This document shows positions 24,025 through 35,726 of a stretch of DNA of 64,000 nt, piece after piece (positions within the stretch are counted from its first letter, which is position 1; the number at the start of each line of letters is the position of its first letter). The stretch is from the IMG/VR virus record IMGVR_UViG_3300013116_000108, positions 124,001 through 188,000 of that record, one strand, 5' to 3'. The notes beneath the pieces were generated by a model. The model did no database searches, was not told where the DNA came from, and saw only the letters and a list, made by a program, of their open reading frames with translations. The position numbers and the translations under genes are program-made.

Positions 24025-25698
24025 TTAAATTGAAATATCCTCTTCTGCTCCTGCTTCAGGTTCTGCTTCTGTGTCTCCACCTTCGCCACCCGCATCAGCA
24101 TCGCCTAGGTCATCACCACCTAAACTATCCAAATCGCCACTCAATCCGCCCGGAGTAATTCCGGCACTTCTAAGTGATTTACTTCCTATAGCAGATTCTG
24201 AGTCACCTTGTTCCTCACGCCATAGTCTGTCATTCTCTGCCATTTCTTCTTCAGTAAGACCTAAAAATCTTTCTAAAGCAAATCTTTTAGAGACATATTT
24301 TAAACCTTCCATCTGTGTAAAGTTGCTAATACGACTAGCATCAATATCACTTTGTCTATAACTAGCAAAGTTTTGAGGTTCATTAAACTCAATATCAAAT
24401 ATTGAATTATCAATGTTAACACCTCTCCAACGTAACCACAATTTAAATTCAGCGTCCATTGTACTTGCTACTAAACTTTGTAGTCGCATACAATACTGAT
24501 TAAATCTATGTTCTTGTATTAGTGCTACACCTACTTTGCCATCTGCTACTGTGTTAGTAGCGTCATCGCCTGATGTGGGCAAATATGTTGCTGGTATTCT
24601 TAAACCTCTGTACAGTTTATTAGTAAAGTATTTTAAGTCTGAAATTTCACCTAGGTTTTCACCACCTGGTAATGTTTCAACTTTAGAACCTCTACCTTCT
24701 GCTGTTTGAGGAAAGAAATAATCTTCATTTGTTGATAATGGATTGTAAGTAGCATCCATCATACTTTGTCCACCACCTGTTTGTGTTGGAATACGTCTTT
24801 GGTGTATTTCGTTTTTAACTCTTTCAACATAACCCATTGCCATGTGTGTTGGCATGTTACCTACGTCAATGTAAAATACTCTACGCTCAGGTGCTCTTTG
24901 AACCCTGTATATAATAATAGCGTCTTCTAATAATTCTTTTTGTTTGAATACTTTAAAAATATTTTCTAATACACTTGTGCCGAATGGCCAGTTATTATCT
25001 AACCCTTCAGTTAAACTTAAATGTACAACGTTTTCAGCATCTATAGAATTTTCAGTTACTTCAGTTTGTCTGCCTTGGTACTGTCCAGCCTGGTTATGTC
25101 CTGTTGTACTAGAACTAGGTGACATGTTTGCTGTTTCTGTGTGTGCTGGTGCTGTAATTGTTAAGTTTTCAAAATTAGGAGCAATATCTTTTAATACATA
25201 AACTTCAGGTGCTTTACCTTTTGCTTCGTTAACAACAACCTTCACTACGTTTTGTGGCTCAACCCAAAACCATTCAAATGTTTCTGGGTCTCTAATAAAT
25301 GTTTGATCTCCGTACTTGAGTACGTTACGAAACATTTTAAAAATTCTTTTATTAAAATCGTTTAAACTAGTCCAATTTTTAAGTTGTTCACTTAAAACTT
25401 TTACTTCTGTTTCTGTTGGATTTTCTTTAAATTTAAATGTAAATGGTGTTCCGTTTTCAGGAGACTTCATTGTACAAAATTCTGCTAGAATATCAATTGC
25501 TGTATTAACTTCTGAATCCATATCCATAGATTCATATTGATGATATCTTTCAATTCTATTCGGGTGTCCTACATATACTTCTGGTAATTGGCTTTGGTAA
25601 TTTTTAAAACCTAAATCGGCTTTAGAGTATCCACCAGCATTGCTAAGAGGACTTAGGGCGCCTGTGTCTACTGTTTTAAAATATTTTTTCCAACTCAT
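24025..25698 (-). CDS. gp20: Portal vertex protein, T4 gp20-like
   Basis: LLEDAIIIYRVQRAPERRVFYIDVGNMP, EDYFFP..EGRGSKVETLPGGENLG motifs. Confidence 0.96.
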   Translation of the reverse strand: MSWKKYFKTVDTGALSPLSNAGGYSKADLGFKNYQSQLPEVYVGHPNRIERYHQYESMDMDSEVNTAIDILAEFCTMKSPENGTPFTFKFKENPTETEVKVLSEQLKNWTSLNDFNKRIFKMFRNVLKYGDQTFIRDPETFEWFWVEPQNVVKVVVNEAKGKAPEVYVLKDIAPNFENLTITAPAHTETANMSPSSSTTGHNQAGQYQGRQTEVTENSIDAENVVHLSLTEGLDNNWPFGTSVLENIFKVFKQKELLEDAIIIYRVQRAPERRVFYIDVGNMPTHMAMGYVERVKNEIHQRRIPTQTGGGQSMMDATYNPLSTNEDYFFPQTAEGRGSKVETLPGGENLGEISDLKYFTNKLYRGLRIPATYLPTSGDDATNTVADGKVGVALIQEHRFNQYCMRLQSLVASTMDAEFKLWLRWRGVNIDNSIFDIEFNEPQNFASYRQSDIDASRISNFTQMEGLKYVSKRFALERFLGLTEEEMAENDRLWREEQGDSESAIGSKSLRSAGITPGGLSGDLDSLGGDDLGDADAGGEGGDTEAEPEAGAEEDISI

Positions 25699-25751: not shown

Positions 25752-28442
25752 TTAACCTTGCTGAGCAATATCCTGAATATGTCTATTACTTTTTCTATTA
25801 GATCCAAGTATAGCATTTAATTTAGAAACTGTTACATTGCCAATTTCTTTGTTATTTTCTAATTCATTTGTAGCAGTAGCAAGTAATTCACTTAAAAGTT
25901 TATTTGTTTTTTCAATACCTGCTGTAACTGACATAGATCCGCTTGTTGTTGCTAGTTCATCATTAGGTGTAATAGTTCCTCCAGTTGACGGTGTAAATAG
26001 TTCTGGCCCTCTTTCACCAACAATATAAGGATTGTCCATTCCTACAGAGCGAATGTTTCCGCCATACTGTTTAAATTGCTGTGGTTTAAACTGCCCATCA
26101 TAGGCATCAAAACTTGTATTAGCATTTAACCACGATACTATTTCGCCTGCTTTAATGTAACCTGGTGAATTTTCGCCATTCTTTCTATAAAAATCTATAG
26201 CCTCTTGTACATTACTTTGCTCTGCTTGGAATTGTCTCTTCCAATATGGCTTGTCTTTAGAACCTGCTTCTAAGTATTGAGCATATATCTCATCAAACAT
26301 CATTCCAAAGCCAGGGCCAAATCCGCCTAAGTTGTCATCACTGTCATGAGATGCTACTGTGGCACCTTTTGGTCCTTTAATTGACCATTGTTTTGCTTTT
26401 AGTTGGCCAAGATATGATTCAGCAGATTTAAGTAAGTCGCCATCTACTGATACATGTTTAGCCTCATTTACTAGAGCGGCAACTTCAGATGAAACTTGAG
26501 CGGCATCTTGTGTACCTAATTTTACGCCGCTACTTTTGGCTACTGCATCTGCTAGTTTAGATGGGTCAGCAATAAATTCAGCATTTTCTTCTGGAGATGA
26601 TTTGGCTATGATTGCCATAGCAGATTGTTTTTGGTTACCAGAGAATCCTGTACCTTCACCATCATTTTGTGCCGCGAGATCTGCCGCTACAACTAGGTTT
26701 TTCCTTCCTTCTGTCTCGTCGCCGTTTCCTATTTCTTCAAAAGCAATTTGATTCTTTAGTTGATTTGAAGCACCACCTAAAACATAATCTAGAGGATCAG
26801 CCGCAAAGTATTTTAATTCTTTAGATATTAACCCAAAGGATTTTGAGATATCTTCTCCTGCTTGTGTTACAGAATCAATCATGGTGTTGATTTTTTCTTG
26901 TATTGTTGGTTCTCCGTTTGCGCCGTCACCAAAGCCTTTGGCAAAATCCGCAACAGCGTCATTAATTGCTGATTTAAGTGAACCTGAAACTTCTGTTAAT
27001 GTAGCACCCATCATCAAGATCGCACCGCCGGCACCATCGGCTTTTTTGCTGTCGCTGGAACCAACTGCTTTGCCTAAATTATTAAATTGTGTTTGTAATT
27101 TTTGAACATCACTGGCCGCCTGTGTCATTACAGTAGCAACGTCACTAACACCATATAAGCCTTCAAACTCTTCACCACTTGCCGCAATACTTGGCAATAT
27201 GTCTCTTATACCTTCTTTGAATTCATCTTGGCTTATCTTTCCTGTTGCTACAGCGTCACCTAAGTCTCTTAATTTTTGTGCCGCATCGCTGTTACCAGCA
27301 ACAAAGTTTTTGATAGTCTGGTTACCAGCCGCCATCTCTAGTGCTAAATCTTTACCAGCAACACCCGCCATTAATACTTGAGATATTGCTGAATCTTGTC
27401 CTGCTGTACTAAAGACTAATTGTAAAGCCTTTTGAGCTTCAAGTGTAGCACCTTGTAATCTTATGTTAGCATCTGCTCTCAAATCATTTTGGGCCATTTC
27501 TTCTGCTAACTGTTGTCTACTTTTACCTGTTAGTCCTACTAGTGTGTTTAAGTCTGAAATGTATTCTTTATACAACTGAGTTTGTTGTCTGTACCCCATG
27601 TTTTGAAAATTAGTATTTCTTGATTGTGTTTGGGTATACTTTGCTAGTTGTTCTGCTTGTTCTTCATAAGACAGACCTAAAGCATATAATTCACCTCCTA
27701 CTGTATGATGAACTGTGTCTGCTAGTTCTACAAATCGTTTAGCACCTAGAGAAACACTACCACCAAAGGCCGCTAATCCTGAAGCATTTTGTTGGACAAT
27801 TTGTGTATAAGAATTCATTGTCAAACCCAACTGTTGTATTTGAGATGCTGTTCTAACAATGTCGCCGTTGTAGTTTGCTCCACTTTGACTTAATGCTATA
27901 AATCCATCATACATGTTTTGGGCATAGGCGGCAATCGCCATTGCGGCCGCTCCAGAGGCCGCTCCAAGTCCTGACAGAGCCGCTCCAACACCTGGTATCT
28001 TAGTTCCCATAACTTGGAAACTATCTGCTACTGCTCCTAACCCGTCACCTAGTGCTCCAGCACCTTGCTGTATAGCCCTACCTAACGTGTCAAAACTAGC
28101 AGGTCCTCTTATAAGATCATTAAGTACATTACCGGTATTTTTTACAATTTTACCTAAAGCACCAGCAACTGCTTTGCCTCGATCGGTCATTGTTTTATCG
28201 AGATCCTTCATCGTATCGTCGAAGTTACCCGACCAATCTTTCATACTAATGCTTAGATCTTTGTTTACTTTGGCTAGTTTTTTAATTTCGTCTTGTGTTT
28301 TTTTAGTTTCTGGATCAGATTTAGGCTTTGACCTTTGGCCATTCATTGTTTCAACAGCCTTTAATAGGTCTTTAAGAGTTTCTTCAGTTGCTACATCACT
28401 GACTATGATTTCGTTATCTTCTGTGTTAATTCTTATTGCCAT
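25752..28442 (-). CDS. Tape-measure-like tail protein
   Basis: Long Ala/Gly/Gln-rich helical protein with C-terminal YIVGERGPELF.P..G.I.PN motif. Confidence 0.7.
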   Translation of the reverse strand: MAIRINTEDNEIIVSDVATEETLKDLLKAVETMNGQRSKPKSDPETKKTQDEIKKLAKVNKDLSISMKDWSGNFDDTMKDLDKTMTDRGKAVAGALGKIVKNTGNVLNDLIRGPASFDTLGRAIQQGAGALGDGLGAVADSFQVMGTKIPGVGAALSGLGAASGAAAMAIAAYAQNMYDGFIALSQSGANYNGDIVRTASQIQQLGLTMNSYTQIVQQNASGLAAFGGSVSLGAKRFVELADTVHHTVGGELYALGLSYEEQAEQLAKYTQTQSRNTNFQNMGYRQQTQLYKEYISDLNTLVGLTGKSRQQLAEEMAQNDLRADANIRLQGATLEAQKALQLVFSTAGQDSAISQVLMAGVAGKDLALEMAAGNQTIKNFVAGNSDAAQKLRDLGDAVATGKISQDEFKEGIRDILPSIAASGEEFEGLYGVSDVATVMTQAASDVQKLQTQFNNLGKAVGSSDSKKADGAGGAILMMGATLTEVSGSLKSAINDAVADFAKGFGDGANGEPTIQEKINTMIDSVTQAGEDISKSFGLISKELKYFAADPLDYVLGGASNQLKNQIAFEEIGNGDETEGRKNLVVAADLAAQNDGEGTGFSGNQKQSAMAIIAKSSPEENAEFIADPSKLADAVAKSSGVKLGTQDAAQVSSEVAALVNEAKHVSVDGDLLKSAESYLGQLKAKQWSIKGPKGATVASHDSDDNLGGFGPGFGMMFDEIYAQYLEAGSKDKPYWKRQFQAEQSNVQEAIDFYRKNGENSPGYIKAGEIVSWLNANTSFDAYDGQFKPQQFKQYGGNIRSVGMDNPYIVGERGPELFTPSTGGTITPNDELATTSGSMSVTAGIEKTNKLLSELLATATNELENNKEIGNVTVSKLNAILGSNRKSNRHIQDIAQQG

Positions 28443-28520: not shown

Positions 28521-29447
28521 ATGAGTGATAAAGAAACAAATCAAGACATGCCAAAAATGGCTACAGAGATTGAAACACCAGAAAAGGCAGTTAATCCTTT
28601 GCAGGCATATTTTCGCAGACCAGCAATTTATGTCCAACTGCCAAGTGGCGGTAAGTTCAACGAGCCGGGCGAACTTGAAATTCCCGTTAACGGAGAAATT
28701 CCAGTTTATCCGATGACAGCAAAAGATGAAATCTTAATGAGAACACCTGATGCTTTAATGAACGGTGCTACTACAGTTGAAGTTATCCAAAGTTGTTGTC
28801 CAAACATTAAAAATGCTTGGAAATTAAGTGCGTTAGATATTGACTTAATTCTTGTTAGTATTAGAATTGCGACATACGGCGAGTCTACTGAAATTAAAGG
28901 TGTTTGTCCAAAATGTAACGAAGAAAACAATTACGAGTTAGATTTAAGAACTATTACAGACAAAGTAACACAACGTGAGTATAAACCGTCAATTACAGTT
29001 AGCGATTTAAAAATACATTTTAAACCATTAACTTACGAAGCAGTTACTAAAGAAGCAATTAAAAACTTTGAACAGCAAAGAATGATTCAAGGCCTTGCTA
29101 CTGATGATACATTAGCAGAACAGGATCGAATTAATAGATTCCAAGATGCTTTTGTAAGATTAACTGTTTATTCGGTTGGGATACTAGCAGAAGCAGTAGG
29201 TCATATTGAAATGGCAGATGGTACTAAAATTTCTGATAGGCAACAAATTAGTGAATTTATAGCAAACTGTGATCGAACAATTTACAATACAATTAAGACA
29301 CACTTAGAAGAAAGTAAAACTAATTCAACTATAGAACCTATCCAATTTGAATGTGCCGGTACTACTGACACAGAAGGAAAACATACACCTTGCGGTGAGA
29401 AATGGCAACAACCATTTACTATTGATAATTCAACTTTTTTCGGATAA
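28521..29447 (+). CDS. gp26: Baseplate hub assembly protein, T4 gp26-like
   Basis: NPL..YFRRP.IY..LPS.G, PMTAKDE, ID.ILV.IR.ATYG, CPKC motifs, C-terminal FF. Confidence 0.8.
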   Translation: MSDKETNQDMPKMATEIETPEKAVNPLQAYFRRPAIYVQLPSGGKFNEPGELEIPVNGEIPVYPMTAKDEILMRTPDALMNGATTVEVIQSCCPNIKNAWKLSALDIDLILVSIRIATYGESTEIKGVCPKCNEENNYELDLRTITDKVTQREYKPSITVSDLKIHFKPLTYEAVTKEAIKNFEQQRMIQGLATDDTLAEQDRINRFQDAFVRLTVYSVGILAEAVGHIEMADGTKISDRQQISEFIANCDRTIYNTIKTHLEESKTNSTIEPIQFECAGTTDTEGKHTPCGEKWQQPFTIDNSTFFG

Positions 29448-29452
29448 GGCTT

Positions 29453-29671
29453 TTGGCGTTAGATAATGAAAGCATTATCAAACTTCTCCAAGATTTTGAT
29501 AATGAGTCAAAAGCCCTACAAAAAGATTTATTGGAGACAACCTGGTATATGAGAGGAGGTATATCTTATAGCGAAGCCATGATGTTGTCACCAAATGAGC
29601 GTAAACAAATACACGATATAATTAAGCAAAATATTAAAAATACTGAAACTACTAAGTTACCTTTAATATAA
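29453..29671 (+). CDS. gp51-like baseplate assembly protein; probably also expressed as -1 frameshift extension of gp26
   Basis: WYMRGGISYSEAM.LSP.ER motif; only a TTG start; frame is open back through a TTTTTTC slippery site in gp26. Confidence 0.65.
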   Translation: MALDNESIIKLLQDFDNESKALQKDLLETTWYMRGGISYSEAMMLSPNERKQIHDIIKQNIKNTETTKLPLI

Positions 29672-29741
29672 ATTCACAATTTAAACATAGTTAAACCAAA
29701 TAACATATTTTAATATAAAGACTACCTGTTTAAATATTCTT

Positions 29742-29930
29742 ATGTACACTCACTATAATGTCATTAATGAACGTACACGCGACGTATACTGTACTGTCTT
29801 TTCTCCAGAAGAAGCACAGCAAGTAATAGACATGCAAAAAATTAATCACCCGCATGAAAGTTTTATAGTTAAAAAAATAAAAACTAGTTCTATAAAACCA
29901 GGCTTTGGGAGAGATCCAGATTTACATTAG
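29742..29930 (+). CDS. Small hypothetical protein, 62 aa
   Basis: ATG exactly 5 nt after TAAATA. Confidence 0.6.
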   Translation: MYTHYNVINERTRDVYCTVFSPEEAQQVIDMQKINHPHESFIVKKIKTSSIKPGFGRDPDLH

Positions 29931-30031
29931 GTCAGACACATACGATTTAACAGAAGACGGGTATTGGGAAATACATTTTGTAGATGATCCATGCGACGAT
30001 GTTTCGCATTGGTTTTTATAAGTCAGAGTTT

Positions 30032-30458
30032 TCTGAAACATTAACAACATTAAAGAACAGTAATGTTATCAACTTCGTTGATAAGTTTTTTCGCTTTCGC
30101 TCAAAACATTTTTTAATTAGATATTAACGAAATAGTATTTCGTTATCATTCAGATATTTTATCCATACTTCGCCCGCTAGGGGCAAAGTAAGGTTGTCAT
30201 CATTCGAGTAACTCACCCATCATATCTAAGAAGATTTAGTATTACTACTAACGGAGGCGGCAACCCGCATACCCCCTACTTCAGCCTTCGCATTAGTCAC
30301 GGAACGTTATGTATATCGAGATATCCAACATACAAATCGCTGAGGTTGTGTCTGTTCTACAGAGCCTCATCTTTTAGCCTTGAAGTTAATTGGCCTTTAC
30401 TTGGTACAACCCAGATTCCGAACACGGGTGTCCGTGTCCTCAAGGGCATGTTTTCAGA
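30032..30458 (-). ncRNA. Candidate large structured RNA / cis-element (~430 nt), family unknown
   Basis: No ORF in track; >10 hairpins, with G-U pairs and GNRA loops favouring the minus strand; ends pair (TCTGAAAACAT / ATGTTTCAGA). Confidence 0.55.
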
Positions 30459-30471
30459 GTACCTATATAGT

Positions 30472-30519
30472 TGTTAAAAGTGCTGTTAAAAGTGCTATTA
30501 AAAATGCTGTTAATAGTAT
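30472..30519 (+). repeat. Four tandem 12-bp repeats (TGTTAAAAGTGC consensus)
   Basis: tgttaaaagtgc tgttaaaagtgc tattaaaaatgc tgttaatagtat. Confidence 0.8.
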
Positions 30520-30525
30520 GTTATA

Positions 30526-31038
30526 CTAGGCACATAATGTTTTAACTAAATCTGAATTTCTTGTAAAAAATTCTTCAAAGTCTGATATGCGCCAGTTAGA
30601 GCCTGTAGTGTTTGACCAATAGTCGATGTAGTTTTTTGCTTTTGATTTGTGTCTAGATTCGATTGCGATAAATTTGCCTACTTGATTGAATTTCATTATT
30701 AATATATTGAAGTCGCCTGTTTCTGCTACATCCATTAGTTGTGATATCCACTCTTCTAACATTGGGATAGGTTCTGGTTGTAATAGTCTGTGAAATGGGA
30801 ATTGTTTATAAAACTTACATTCCGCATTAAGTTTAGGAAAACTTTGTCCGGGAACAATATCACCCTTAAAGGCTCTTACTTGCCCTTCATGAAGTATTTC
30901 CATTCTTGCTTTATTAGACCCGCCCACGTAAGCACCGGATCCTGGAGCTCTTATAAACGATTCACCGTATAGTCCGGACAAGAATTTTGCGACATCTCGT
31001 TCCCAACCTGATCCTTTTGCTTTTTGTGGGCTTGGCAT
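30526..31038 (-). CDS. PD-(D/E)xK nuclease, Holliday junction resolvase-like
   Basis: KAKGSGWER.VA..L...R.PGSGA...GDIV...AECK motif. Confidence 0.75.
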   Translation of the reverse strand: MPSPQKAKGSGWERDVAKFLSGLYGESFIRAPGSGAYVGGSNKARMEILHEGQVRAFKGDIVPGQSFPKLNAECKFYKQFPFHRLLQPEPIPMLEEWISQLMDVAETGDFNILIMKFNQVGKFIAIESRHKSKAKNYIDYWSNTTGSNWRISDFEEFFTRNSDLVKTLCA

Positions 31039-31316: not shown

Positions 31317-31880
31317 CTACGACAGCGATTTCTGAACTATTTCTTTAATCTCGTCCCACGAGTTGAAACAATCTAACTGAAATTGCCATCTACTATCAGG
31401 AGAATAATTAACGCCGTGGCGATGTCCACCAGCATTAATAAATGTTATTTTTGTATAATTGTGATCGTATAATAATTCGTCGTTTTCGTTATACCATTGA
31501 ATTCTCTGAGGAAATGATAATGGAATTATTAATCCAGCAGGCCTAAAATGGTCTTGATGTATATCAACTTGTGTAGCAGTTTCTTGAAAATTAGTTCTTA
31601 CTAGTTGGAATCCTGCCTGTCCACTACCGGGCATACTTTCATCTTTTTCAAAGTTAAATTTTAATCCAAATTTTTCAAAATACCTAACCCAATAATCTAC
31701 AATAGGTTCTTTTAAAATTGCTGGATTATAAACAACTTCTAACCCTAACGGTATACCGTGTTTACTATGATACATTTCAAATTCATTATCATACTTGTCG
31801 TACAAATACGAAAACTCATCTATGTTGTATCCTATAGGAGTTTCTATTACAAAATTATCTTTGGTTCGTTCAGTGTACAA
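31317..31880 (-). CDS. Putative 2OG-Fe(II) oxygenase / cupin-fold protein
   Basis: HQD...H.V...R spacing of the HxD..H facial triad; TTG start uncertain. Confidence 0.5.
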   Translation of the reverse strand: MYTERTKDNFVIETPIGYNIDEFSYLYDKYDNEFEMYHSKHGIPLGLEVVYNPAILKEPIVDYWVRYFEKFGLKFNFEKDESMPGSGQAGFQLVRTNFQETATQVDIHQDHFRPAGLIIPLSFPQRIQWYNENDELLYDHNYTKITFINAGGHRHGVNYSPDSRWQFQLDCFNSWDEIKEIVQKSLS

Positions 31881-33703
31881 GTTAATGTCTGCCTTATTTT
31901 AAAGTTATCGCTGACTCTATCACTTCCTTCTAGAAGCATATGAGCAGTAGTTGATGTAGCGCCATTTAATGTTGGCGTAAATTCTATTGTTGTTTTTCTT
32001 CTTACATCATGTATAAAGTCATAGTTAAATGTTTTAGTAATTGGATATTCAACATCATAATCAAATAGTCTAGCATCGCAATACTTAATAAGTTCTGTTA
32101 AGATGTCTTTATCAATGCTGTATTGCTCGAGAAATGTTTTTGCTTCAGCATAAAACTCATCTCGTTTTTCTGTTAAGTTTTCTCTGTAGCCTAAACTTTG
32201 ACTTGCTAATCCAAATACATAATCGTCTATTCTTCCTTTTGCTTTATCAAAATGTTTTCTAATTAAACCGTTACTGTTAATAACATAATTGTACCAGTCG
32301 TTATAAAATTCTTTTTTAGATACAATATTTTCTCTATCTAAATAATCTGCGGCATCACGTAAAAAATTAAATTCGTGTCCTGTTCTTGTAGTCCATGTCC
32401 ATTCCCAGATATGTTTTAAGTCATCTTCCGATAGCCATTTTGTAGAAACTACAAGTTCAATATCTTCTTTTGTTTCTTCGTTTAGTACTCCAGGAAAAGG
32501 TTTACGAATAGTTTTAAATCCAAACTCTTCTCTACTTTTTCTGCTACCTAATTCAGCATTTGGTAATAATGCTAAAGGATATAGATATGTTGTTAATTCT
32601 TGATAATTTGTAATTTCTAAATATGTGTCTTTCCAACTATCTACTGTTTCTCCGGGATTACCTACAATAAGTTCACAGTCAAATGGCAAACCTAATTCAG
32701 CACAACGTTTAGCAAAATATTCATAATCGTTACTATCCATATTATCACGTTTTATAAGTTCTAATGCTAATGGTGTTAGTGTTTGTAAACTCATAATAAA
32801 ACTTTTAATAAGTCCGGCATCATACATTTTCTTTGCTATTTGTAAAATGTGTTCGTTGGCATTTTTTGCCCAGTTAACAAAGAATGTTTTAGGATAACCG
32901 TATTTCTTTTTTGTAGCGATAATCATATCAGCAATAGCATTATCTCTATCTTTTAAAATACCAAAGTTAGCATCAACACTATACAAGAATCCTATTTTAT
33001 TTTTACCCGCATATTCTATTTCTGCTTCTAATCTGTTAATGTCGTGATTAACTAGTTTACTATATGTAAGTCCTCCCCAATCACAAAATGAACAAGCATA
33101 AGGACATCCTCTGTTTGTTTCAAACAGCATAGCATGATGTGATTTTATCTTAGGCATTGAGCCTGACAAATAAGGACTTGGTAATTTACTTAAATCACGT
33201 TGTCTAGTTACTCTTTTATTATCTGCTACATTATTAGTCCAATGTGTTCCAAAGTTAACAGCAGTATTAGGTTGTGTGTCAATGTATTCTTTATTTGGAT
33301 TTAGTAATATGTTTTTAAATATTTCTTCTCCTTCTTGGAAAACAACAACGTCAACATACTTGTGACCGTTCCACCATTCATGTTTGCTGTCTTGCGGAAC
33401 TTGTGGACCACCGTAAATAATCATACACTCTGGCCAACGTTTTTTAATTTTTTCTGCTAGTTGGTTAGTAAAATTTTCATTCCAAATGTAAACACTAAAT
33501 CCAAATATAAAAGGATCTACTATTTCGTTTACTATTTCGTCAATGTCTTTCTTTTCATAATAAAGACCTGCTAATTGATAATTGTTTTTAACTTGTTCAT
33601 CTAATTCAGCATAAGTCCATAACCCGGCAACACTATACGGCAAGAATTTATGATTGCCAGGGTTAATAGTCATACTAAAGTTTGCTAGATAAACATTTTT
33701 CAT
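31847..33703 (-). CDS. Cobalamin-binding radical SAM enzyme
   Basis: N-terminal B12-binding-like region (GFSVYIWN, IIYGGPQ, EGE) and ETNRGCPYACSFCDWG CxxxCxxC motif. Confidence 0.9.
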   Translation of the reverse strand: MKNVYLANFSMTINPGNHKFLPYSVAGLWTYAELDEQVKNNYQLAGLYYEKKDIDEIVNEIVDPFIFGFSVYIWNENFTNQLAEKIKKRWPECMIIYGGPQVPQDSKHEWWNGHKYVDVVVFQEGEEIFKNILLNPNKEYIDTQPNTAVNFGTHWTNNVADNKRVTRQRDLSKLPSPYLSGSMPKIKSHHAMLFETNRGCPYACSFCDWGGLTYSKLVNHDINRLEAEIEYAGKNKIGFLYSVDANFGILKDRDNAIADMIIATKKKYGYPKTFFVNWAKNANEHILQIAKKMYDAGLIKSFIMSLQTLTPLALELIKRDNMDSNDYEYFAKRCAELGLPFDCELIVGNPGETVDSWKDTYLEITNYQELTTYLYPLALLPNAELGSRKSREEFGFKTIRKPFPGVLNEETKEDIELVVSTKWLSEDDLKHIWEWTWTTRTGHEFNFLRDAADYLDRENIVSKKEFYNDWYNYVINSNGLIRKHFDKAKGRIDDYVFGLASQSLGYRENLTEKRDEFYAEAKTFLEQYSIDKDILTELIKYCDARLFDYDVEYPITKTFNYDFIHDVRRKTTIEFTPTLNGATSTTAHMLLEGSDRVSDNFKIRQTLTCTLNEPKIIL

Positions 33704-34314
33704 TTTGCCTTAAATATCCTCAGGGAATGATAGTGTTGATGTGTTGTAACTAAACTAGGCCAAGGTCCAATACATTCCACCTCAGTTAAAAATTGTTGTT
33801 TGTTCCAACCGGATTCTTCCATGTAATTATAGTCTTCCATATTTGGTGTTGTTATAACTAATATACCATCTTCATTTAAGCATTTAGAAATATTTTCGGC
33901 AGGTGCTGAACTTAAATGTCCTTTTGTAAACAATCCACTTGCTAATATAATATCGTATTTCTTAGGCAATGGTTGTTTTACAATATCAATAATACTGACA
34001 TTTCTATAATGCTCTTCTGCTTTTTTTATAAACTGTTCAGTTAGATCATATCCGTCTACATTAGAATACCCAGCCTGCCATAGTATTTCTCCACCGGGGC
34101 CTGGTCCACAACCTAAATCAGCAATCTCAATTTCCCATTGCTTTGGGTAGTTTTTTATTACATAATCAGTTGTTTTAACTGGTCCCAACCAGCCTGCTTC
34201 TTCGCATATATCTTTGGTGTACGTTTCCCAATGTTCATAAAGTTTTCTTTGTTCTTGTTTGTTGTCAAATCCATTATTGTAACTGTCGCCTAAATTTTTA
34301 TTGAGATTGCTCAT
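33700..34314 (-). CDS. Class I SAM-dependent methyltransferase
   Basis: IADLGCGPG, VDGYD, YDIILASG.F..GH motifs; likely start 34314 (TAATG coupling). Confidence 0.85.
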   Translation of the reverse strand: MSNLNKNLGDSYNNGFDNKQEQRKLYEHWETYTKDICEEAGWLGPVKTTDYVIKNYPKQWEIEIADLGCGPGPGGEILWQAGYSNVDGYDLTEQFIKKAEEHYRNVSIIDIVKQPLPKKYDIILASGLFTKGHLSSAPAENISKCLNEDGILVITTPNMEDYNYMEESGWNKQQFLTEVECIGPWPSLVTTHQHYHSLRIFKAK

Positions 34315-35726
34315 TATTTTTTTATCCAATCTGGGTTATCAATTAGTGTGTTATGTATATTTACTCTACTTACTTTAGGAATACACGTTGCTTGGCGTAA
34401 TATTGCGACTGTGCTTACTAAACTTGTGTATTTTACAGGCTGTTTAAATGGTTGCATTTTATCTTTACACCATTCTTGTAATTCTTGAGGAGAAACATCA
34501 CCATTGTATATACAAGCCGGTACAAAGTGTAATTTTTCGTCAGGTTGTGGATAAACATAAACCTCTTTAACACCTGGGTGTTGTGAAATAATATGCTCAA
34601 TTTCAAATGGATATACTTTACCGCCACCTCTTACAATTATAAGTTCATTTGATCTTCCTTTTAATATCCAGTTACCTTCTTCGTTTATTTCAGCAATATC
34701 TCCTGTGTCCCACCAATCACCGTCCGGTGTCATAGGACCTCTAAATTCAATAGTGCTATTTTCTGTTGACAGTCTGTATTCAGCACCGGCATTTACAAGA
34801 CACTCAATTGGCTTGCCTATTGTATCAAAATTGTTACTATAATTAACAAGTGTCATGCCTGTTGCGGCATCACCATATCCACATATCCAATTACTATGGC
34901 CAAAGAACTTTTCAAATTCTTCTTTTTGCCCATCAATAAGTGCGGCACCACTATACTCAAATACTTCGATACTGTGTCCACCGTTGTCACCTTTGTCAAT
35001 TACTTTTTGCCATGCTAGTGGAAAGCCTGCTAACCAAGTAGGTTTAACCCATTTAGCCGCCTCGGCATATTCTTCTTGCTCGTATATAAGATGGCAATGC
35101 CCACCTTTTGCTATTGTTGTAAATGTAACTTCTTGTCCCCAGCCAATGTAAGGACCCATAGAATTAATTGTTCTGTTTGTTTCTGGACTACGATACCATT
35201 TGTTTCCACGTTCACGATAATAATGTGTAACGTCTTGACTTGTGCCATAGTTGTTTTCATCTAGCTCGTAAGGTACAGGATAACTTTTAGTCCAGCCGTA
35301 TGGATGACTAGTTCCACTACTATAATAAAGCATTATTTCTTTGTCAAGAACTGTACTTTTTTCATAATGTAAATGTTCTAAATCAACAGTACCATCTAAG
35401 TTAACATAAACAATAGCATTAGATTTGTTAGCATCTAATCTAAATTTCCAGTCACCCTCTTCACCGTTCTTATATGCTTGTTTTAAATCTTCACCCCATG
35501 GTAAAGTTGTCGCACACATATCTAAAGCCGCGGCAAATAGATACAAATATGTATGAACAGAGTTAATACCTACTACGCTTATTCTGTGACCAGCATGGTA
35601 TCCTTGTTCTTTGTACCAAGCATTAATCTTGTGTATCTCTTTAATAAATTCGTTGTATGTTAATTTTGTATTTTTATCACTCAGAGCTATATTCTCCGAT
35701 GGTACTAATAAGTGATACGGCCTCAT
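34314..35726 (-). CDS. AMP-forming adenylation enzyme (ANL / acyl-CoA synthetase family)
   Basis: YSSGTS loop, GYG, WDTGD, GRSNELIIVRGG.KVYP.EIE, C-terminal PKV motifs. Confidence 0.85.
   Translation of the reverse strand: MRPYHLLVPSENIALSDKNTKLTYNEFIKEIHKINAWYKEQGYHAGHRISVVGINSVHTYLYLFAAALDMCATTLPWGEDLKQAYKNGEEGDWKFRLDANKSNAIVYVNLDGTVDLEHLHYEKSTVLDKEIMLYYSSGTSHPYGWTKSYPVPYELDENNYGTSQDVTHYYRERGNKWYRSPETNRTINSMGPYIGWGQEVTFTTIAKGGHCHLIYEQEEYAEAAKWVKPTWLAGFPLAWQKVIDKGDNGGHSIEVFEYSGAALIDGQKEEFEKFFGHSNWICGYGDAATGMTLVNYSNNFDTIGKPIECLVNAGAEYRLSTENSTIEFRGPMTPDGDWWDTGDIAEINEEGNWILKGRSNELIIVRGGGKVYPFEIEHIISQHPGVKEVYVYPQPDEKLHFVPACIYNGDVSPQELQEWCKDKMQPFKQPVKYTSLVSTVAILRQATCIPKVSRVNIHNTLIDNPDWIKK

Follow-up and report, generated by a model that had tools for sequence, protein, structure and literature searches.

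A conserved frameshift in the gene of the tail-assembly chaperone is a hallmark of long-tailed phages; to our knowledge, T4-type myoviruses have no recognised equivalent of it, and the roles of their gp26 and gp51 proteins are still vague. The frameshift, including that of lambda gpG/gpGT, has been described by Levin (1993) and by Xu, Hendrix and Duda (2004, 2013, 2014), as summarised in PMC5009743. In lambda, a -1 shift produces G and GT at a ratio of 30:1; they bind the tape measure (through the short part) and the tube protein (through the extension), and neither is found in virions (PMC5009743). Leiman et al. place T4 gp26 (hub assembly protein) and gp51 (hub assembly catalyst/chaperone) among the chaperones of hub assembly (PMC3004832, Table 2). 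Here, we analysed a 64,000-nucleotide (nt) stretch of DNA (positions 124,001 to 188,000 of the IMG/VR record IMGVR_UViG_3300013116_000108, hereafter the window), belonging to a 204-kb marine jumbo-phage record, in which a gp26-like baseplate-hub assembly gene ends one codon past a slippery heptamer and is followed by an overlapping open reading frame (ORF) in the -1 frame. We propose, with a probability of roughly 0.88, that a programmed -1 frameshift decodes this gp26-like gene into a short and a long form.

As in lambda G/GT, the predicted -1 slip would take place near the 3' end of a morphogenesis gene and would give a short and a C-terminally extended protein sharing their N-terminus (308 and 383 residues here, as read from the sequence). 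The gene also lies next to a tape-measure-like gene, and its products, if they resemble T4 gp26/gp51, would serve in assembly without becoming part of the virion. With Escherichia coli dnaX (tau/gamma), the locus would share a bacterial-type -1 heptamer slip, a downstream stem-loop and the supply of two proteins from a single gene at a set ratio. It differs from dnaX, where the frameshift yields the shorter of the two products and an upstream Shine-Dalgarno-like element acts as a stimulator; no such stimulator is evident in the window sequence.

The gp26-like ORF closes with ACT TTT TTC GGA TAA (29433-29447), so that T TTT TTC falls in the X XXY YYZ phase relative to the 308-residue reading frame, at the very position given in the initial annotation of this DNA. 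An IMG/VR scan yielded 69 loci with gp26 homologs at 32-100% protein identity (the window and the phages Atu_ph07 and Phosso were included in the analysis). Conservation of the heptamer and of the -1 relationship among homologs had been suggested as a check, and the in-frame heptamer was recovered in 70 of 70 analysable loci over this whole range of identity, with the -1 extension throughout. The string NNT TTT TTC G stood at the same place in 52 of 52 non-redundant homologs with GC contents of 34-48%. The pattern was NNT TTT TTC in all of them and never NNV TTT TTT, and the codon preceding the heptamer varied in its amino acid (Asn, Ser, His, Thr, Arg) while its third base was always T. Elsewhere in the same genes, Phe-Phe was written TTT TTC in only 7 of 30 cases, and the chance expectation of the heptamer pattern was ~0.06 per sequence; conservation of the heptamer far beyond chance is confirmed. 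The 0-frame stop of the relatives was TAA, TGA or TAG and lay 1, 3 or 4 codons past the heptamer. Among six further jumbo phages, five carried the heptamer (RaK2, PA5oct, XaC1, CBB and a Vibrio phage), and the same slip site was found in the E. coli phages 121Q, PBECO4 and phAPEC6, the phAPEC6 junction reading CAT TTT TTC GAG TAA. In the Ralstonia phage RsoM2USA, a T9 run replaces T TTT TTC (GTT TTT TTT TCC, L077 ~2268-2276), accompanied by an 82-residue -1 ORF and a strong hairpin 12 nt downstream of the run.

These data also bear on the simplest alternative, according to which no recoding occurs, Phe-Phe being simply a motif conserved at the C-terminus and the downstream ORF being either a small gene with no relation to it or non-coding DNA. 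T4 gp26 does end in EFFELL with no downstream frame, as this explanation would have it, but the conservation described above is at the nucleotide and not the amino-acid level, the length and sequence of the extension are kept in a family of more than 5000 protein clusters, and homologs fused in frame exist (see below), which leaves the absence of recoding hardly credible.

Past the slip, the codons read CGG ATA AGG CTT TTG (R I R L L), and no stop interrupts the -1 frame on its way into the downstream ORF, whose only canonical start is a TTG, as had been reported for this junction; the predicted trans-frame product is 307 + 76 = 383 residues long. Extension length is 76-77 residues from the slip in homologous loci and 70-82 residues across distant isolates, the -1 ORF measuring 70-73 residues in RaK2, PA5oct, XaC1, CBB and the Vibrio phage. 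The extension begins R-x-R/K-L-L in synonymous spellings (e.g. AGG CTT TTG, CGC CTC TTA, CGG CTC CTG), and R1, L4 and a WxMRG core (W35, M37, R38 and G39) are invariant in alignment A2. Protein conservation sets in with the Arg codon overlapping the heptamer, ahead of all candidate starts, and in most loci a stop closes the -1 frame 0-3 codons before the heptamer. The AlphaFold2 (AF2) model of the 76-residue extension is helical, with a predicted local distance difference test score (pLDDT) of 90, and a Foldseek search of this model against BFVD gave no match below an E-value of 1, a small helical domain carrying too little signal.

In ten GenBank/RefSeq regions, the frameshift was annotated in none, and the extension was either absent or recorded as a small "hypothetical protein", the -1 ORF being wholly unannotated in RaK2, PA5oct and RsoM2USA. 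The starts called by gene callers for the small ORF were scattered over many positions. In some phages, an ATG in the -1 frame overlaps the gp26 stop with the heptamer kept, as ATGA in Atu_ph07 (L001 4825-4827) and Phosso (L002 4825-4827) and as TAATG in phAPEC6 (L088 2031-2033); one further locus (L010) also has a -1-frame ATG at or near the gp26-like stop.

Such junctions, together with the TTG present at extension codon 4 in most loci and with GenBank records annotating a separate small ORF or none, would fit the production of two separate proteins, the downstream ORF being translated alone through termination-reinitiation or coupling at the gp26 stop and the -1 relation being a by-product of the overlapping stop and start. 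We nevertheless regard this explanation as improbable. No ATG, GTG or TTG exists in extension codons 0-10 in 14 of 50 loci, nor in codons 0-29 in 8 of the 50, and the TTG of the window is located within the stem presented below, 3 nt past an AAGG. Natural in-frame fusions place the extension at the C-terminus of the same polypeptide, and separate translation would leave unexplained both the invariant T TTT TTC and its relaxation in two-gene phages. Because many loci have no start codon and conservation begins upstream of the candidate starts, independent initiation is not the general mechanism. A conserved independent start had been put forward as the counter-test to the frameshift; many loci have no start at all and an ATG at or near the stop occurs in some lineages only, in which independent initiation may provide an extra free small protein.

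The proposed frameshift also finds an echo in phages that do without it. Searching the extension profile against 1.84 billion representative proteins returned 534 matches, most of which were ORFs of 44-98 residues; 20 were proteins of 319-351 residues carrying the extension as an in-frame C-terminus after the PF12322 domain. The junction of these in-frame long forms (..F-R-x-K/R-L-I..) is coded in a non-slippery manner, for example AGT TTC AGA. A short PF12322 paralog of 281-329 residues lies directly upstream of the long form in all 5 loci with enough flank, ending 3-5 residues past the Phe position with relaxed codons (TTC TTT, TTC TTG, TTT ATC). These uncultured jumbo phages with tandem genes (L080, L081, L082, L084, L086) share the extension domain with the window (E 1e-15 to 1e-24) and differ from it in that their long form is read in one non-slippery frame and their short form is a separate upstream paralog. 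One such two-gene locus, on a 327-kb contig, has the same order of portal, tape-measure-like gene and hub genes as the window. As judged from their coding sequences, the two-gene phages are a natural control, in which the heptamer would no longer be held where separate genes give the short and long forms, and the natural in-frame fusions show that the extension belongs to one polypeptide with the PF12322 domain, as its C-terminus; for the predicted trans-frame product, they show that such an architecture is viable.

For one natural long form (P0116), the AF2 model reached a pLDDT of 94.9 and a predicted template modelling score (pTM) of 0.90, with the junction Phe within a helix and the extension modelled as three helices packed on the body. 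Its fold matches in BFVD were T4-like hub assembly proteins, with E-values down to 6e-17, whereas Foldseek against the PDB identified no solved relative and the VIA wide search returned only helical hairpins (Z up to 8.1) and no tail-assembly-chaperone fold. In the short paralogs of two of the two-gene phages (L080 1270-1295; L086 ~1015-1040), AAT TTT TTC or AAT TTT TTA is retained and the -1 frame stops at once; these slippery-like codons may be a relic of a frameshifting ancestor.

Folding of the sequence downstream of the heptamer gave a long-range stem in most loci, with a 5' arm beginning 6 nt past the heptamer. In the window, this candidate stimulatory stem has two 10-nt arms (Table 1), and its fold has a minimum free energy (MFE) of -21.2 kcal/mol with a z-score of -3.15. 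In alignment A1 (50 sequences), the corresponding columns 14-23 with 75-84 were paired in 79% of cells versus 70% in shuffles, and 35 cells held double changes preserving the helix (e.g. U-A to C-G, G-C to A-U); these pairing and double-change values were reached by 0 of 500 shuffles. Controls in which the partner was slid along the sequence gave 27-54% pairing versus 79% for the stem. In 36 of the 50 loci, the first helix begins 4-6 nt past the heptamer (in 26 of them at exactly 6 nt), and the median z-score is -3.7; about a dozen loci pair with a different 3' partner, the position of the 5' arm being kept. In distant isolates, a stem likewise begins 6-7 nt downstream of the heptamer. Computationally, this geometry would fit that of a stimulatory RNA structure located 5-9 nt downstream of a slip site.

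The stimulator initially proposed was another one, namely pairing of GCTTT (29449-53) with AAAGC in the loop of a small hairpin at 29462-29479. Its elements are indeed present in the sequence, but the hairpin is paired at about the shuffled level (53% of cells versus 50% in shuffles, with 14 of 500 shuffles as high) and is missing from the MFE and centroid folds of the window, the conserved stem being the one of Table 1. The GCTTT/AAAGC pseudoknot itself was rejected: its 3' partner would be made up of the four loop nucleotides and the closing base of a 7-bp hairpin, a sterically implausible arrangement, and this hairpin is not conserved. The inner hairpin of the window's MFE fold was not conserved either.

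The position of the stem also helps to separate a slip of the ribosome from a slip of the polymerase, in which an extra U inserted in the T6 tract of a minority of the mRNA would lead to the same fusion protein. The site is a homopolymer, the T9 of RsoM2USA is long enough for polymerase slippage, so that the mechanism there may differ, and the assembled contigs are compatible with a minority +1U transcript. In the window, by contrast, we consider transcriptional slippage very unlikely: a T6 tract is short for slippage by a bacterial or phage polymerase, as established (review PMC5009743), the phase-specific NNT TTT TTC is needed by tandem tRNA slippage and not by a polymerase, the 6-nt distance of the stem matches the geometry of a ribosomal stimulator, and an RNA-library contig identical to the window has T6 at the site. 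RNA-library contigs were seen to span the 3' end of gp26 and the junction, contig X16 being identical to the window over 29382-29536.

The evidence for a programmed -1 frameshift thus consists of the sequence features of the junction, their conservation, and the alternation between one-gene and two-gene solutions, and this comparative evidence strongly supports the fusion of the gp26-like protein to the downstream ORF that the initial annotation had proposed. From these features we infer the slip, the efficiency with which it takes place and the role of the products as chaperones. Several points weigh against the frameshift. RNAalifold applied to all 50 junctions returned no consensus structure, about a dozen loci having a different 3' partner, which is why pair counts were used to test the named helix; moreover, the two arms of the stem also code for the conserved motifs R-L-L and S-K-A, and their conservation is partly a coding constraint. 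A free small protein could also be made in Atu_ph07, Phosso, phAPEC6 and L010. The short paralog of one two-gene phage retains AAT TTT TTC, and such codons can hence persist without a downstream frame. Finally, DNA contigs and RNA-library contigs of independent marine samples read through the T6 tract with no indel, but these are assembled contigs, which hide rare transcript variants.

Table 1. Features of the gp26-like locus, in coordinates of the window.
Feature	Position	Strand	Remarks
gp26-like baseplate-hub assembly gene, 0 frame	28521-29447	+	308 residues, C-terminus NSTFFG, stop TAA; from the ORF list
Slippery heptamer T TTT TTC (X XXY YYZ)	29435-29441	+	One codon before the gp26-like stop; would allow two tRNA-Phe to re-pair one base back
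Six-base spacer	29442-29447	+	GGA (last 0-frame sense codon) and stop TAA (29445-47)
-1-frame extension	29441-29671	+	76 codons (RIRLLALDNES...WYMRGG...KLPLI) and TAA (29669-71)
Stem, 5' arm	29448-29457	+	GGCUUUUGGC; begins 6 nt past the heptamer; includes the TTG at 29453
Stem, 3' arm	29506-29515	+	GUCAAAAGCC; pairs with 29448-57
Small hairpin GATAATG-AAAG-CATTATC	29462-29479	+	Present, not a conserved element
Predicted tryptic junction peptide of the trans-frame product			WQQPFTIDNSTFFR in the window; YDPSHFFR in phAPEC6
Tape-measure-like virion protein gene, divergent neighbour	25752-28442	-	896 residues; tape-measure identity putative
T4-type portal gene	24025-25698	-	Beyond the tape-measure-like gene

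If the frameshift operates as we propose, most ribosomes would read TTT TTC GGA and stop at TAA, releasing the 308-residue protein, approximately a complete PF12322 domain. A fraction of ribosomes would be paused with two tRNA-Phe on UUU UUC and with the 10-bp stem, located 6 nt downstream, at the mRNA entrance; both tRNAs would then move back one base onto U UUU UU and decoding would restart at CGG, adding the 76 residues predicted to form three helices packing on the gp26 body in a 383-residue protein. Both the short and the long form would be required, in a set ratio, as chaperones absent from the virion that assist the assembly of the baseplate hub and tape-measure core, a role modelled on T4 gp26/gp51 and functionally analogous to that of lambda G/GT.

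The relationship to T4 rests on the PF12322 (T4_baseplate) domain, which the 308-residue protein matches at 6.6e-16 and 59.1 bits, against a Pfam cut-off of 24.5; the Pfam scan gave this family only, and the PHROG match was phrog_150 ("baseplate hub"). The gp26-like gene is the sole PF12322 gene of the whole 204-kb record, and Atu_ph07, RaK2 and PA5oct likewise have one each, T4 having two. T4 gp26 (208 residues) is PF12322 throughout and, like the 0-frame product of the window, ends just past the conserved Phe-Phe, while T4 gp51 (249 residues), with PF12322 at residues 1-201 followed by a 48-residue tail, resembles the predicted trans-frame product in combining the domain with a helical C-terminal tail. 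T4 differs in having two divergently transcribed PF12322 genes and no recoding. In alignment A3, C96, C99, C244 and C247 are invariant (CxxC ... CxxC); both pairs are also present in T4 gp26, and in T4 gp51 only the first pair is an obvious CxxC.

The initial annotation had called the extension gp51-like, and this label is upheld by the whole long form, which aligns end to end with T4 gp51: the full-length long-form profile (residues 9-329) is colinear with the gp51 family (3-249), tail included, at an E-value of 3.6e-5. Homology of the tails is weak at the sequence level, the gp51 tail being ~28 residues shorter than the extension: the tail-only comparison gave P 0.02, an hmmsearch with the extension profile gave the gp51 family scores no higher than those of shuffled decoys, and single-sequence hhalign comparisons with T4 gp26 and gp51 were insensitive. 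An Atlas search gave a lead to PF28602 (Gp51_C), with a score of 0.90. In an unrooted domain tree with long branches, T4 gp26 and gp51 form their own clade and the jumbo in-frame long forms fall in two clades, a pattern suggesting that phages changed between one gene and two genes more than once; the gp26/gp51 duplication of T4 looks independent. It had also been stated that the terminal FF of the gp26-like protein reflects the slippery site, a view that has to be reversed. T4 gp26 ends in EFFELL with its FF coded TTC TTT; Phe-Phe is an ancestral amino-acid motif which the slip site would exploit, and not the reverse. The T4 record moreover annotates a gene 26' (L078 2803-3090, minus strand) as an internal in-frame product corresponding to the C-terminal 95 residues of gp26; T4 gene 26 therefore also gives two proteins, by a different route.

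The proposal that this pair is a G/GT equivalent held as a functional analogy, with short and long forms of an assembly chaperone, but no sequence or fold link to lambda-type chaperones was found. The protein of the window belongs to PF12322 with a Cys4 site and shows no Phage_TAC family match or fold match; the heptamer is T TTT TTC instead of the G GGA AAG of lambda, with a conserved long stem as the candidate stimulator. Gene order differs as well, the lambda genes lying between the major tail tube gene and the tape-measure gene, on the same strand as the latter and directly ahead of it, whereas the gene of the window is divergent, with the portal gene beyond. The description of the gp26-like gene as next to the tape-measure-like gene was accordingly right in that the two genes adjoin, and has to be amended in that they are transcribed divergently, the former not being upstream of the latter. 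Equivalence to G/GT is reasonable as a functional analogy only, and not as family membership.

More broadly, T4-type contractile tails could have their own, non-homologous counterpart of G/GT, in which hub and tape-measure assembly would require short and C-terminally extended forms of a single PF12322 chaperone at a set ratio, with repeated evolutionary switching between one frameshifting gene (RaK2-, PA5oct- and Atu_ph07-like phages, marine jumbo phages) and two genes (the tandem jumbo pairs; T4 26/51). We put this idea forward tentatively, at slightly less than even odds; if true, it would turn the long-unexplained roles of T4 gp26 and gp51 into a single testable problem. The site suggests recoding of the gp26/gp51 family in a large and environmentally abundant group of jumbo phages and would tie gp26 and gp51 together as the short and long forms of one chaperone, and the alternation between one and two genes is a natural experiment on the importance of fixed-ratio co-expression. 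Since 121Q, PBECO4 and phAPEC6 carry the site and can be grown on laboratory E. coli, it is directly testable. Full-text searches of the literature retrieved no report of frameshifting for gp26, gp51 or baseplate-hub genes, and the papers on the genomes of CBB, Atu_ph07 and phAPEC6 do not mention it for the gp26-like gene; we found no prior description of a gp26-like frameshift. In the phAPEC6 paper, the tape-measure-like neighbour gp231c appears in the virion proteome table, while neither the gp26-like gp232 nor the small ORF gp233 is named there or anywhere else in the text.

The neighbours of the gp26-like gene on the minus strand encode a major capsid protein, a prohead protease, the T4-type portal and the 896-residue tape-measure-like protein. 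Synteny of the window was matched in RaK2, PA5oct, XaC1, CBB, Phosso, L081 and phAPEC6; the neighbour gene of RaK2 carries a tape-measure-like annotation, and in Atu_ph07 the neighbour of the gp26-like gene is not a tape-measure gene. The 896-residue protein displays VGERGPELF near its C-terminus (28025-28105, minus strand, residues 803-829), and its only PHROG match was phrog_30701 (E 0.008). We take G-E-x-G-P-E-like motifs to occur near the C-terminus of many tape-measure proteins, which provides a lead only for its identity.

Rfam and tRNA scans of 29300-30700 gave no matches; within this interval, 30130-30525 forms ~400 nt with no notable ORF and apparently richer in G+C than its surroundings. 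Further along, 31847-34329 (minus strand) encodes a 618-residue B12-binding radical SAM protein (PF04055, PF02310) followed by a 209-residue ORF, auxiliary genes unusual in a phage; the product of the latter is, judged by eye, presumably methyltransferase-like. Comparison of window positions 28900-29900 with public runs indicated that this phage or close strains are present in marine metagenomes of at least seven studies.

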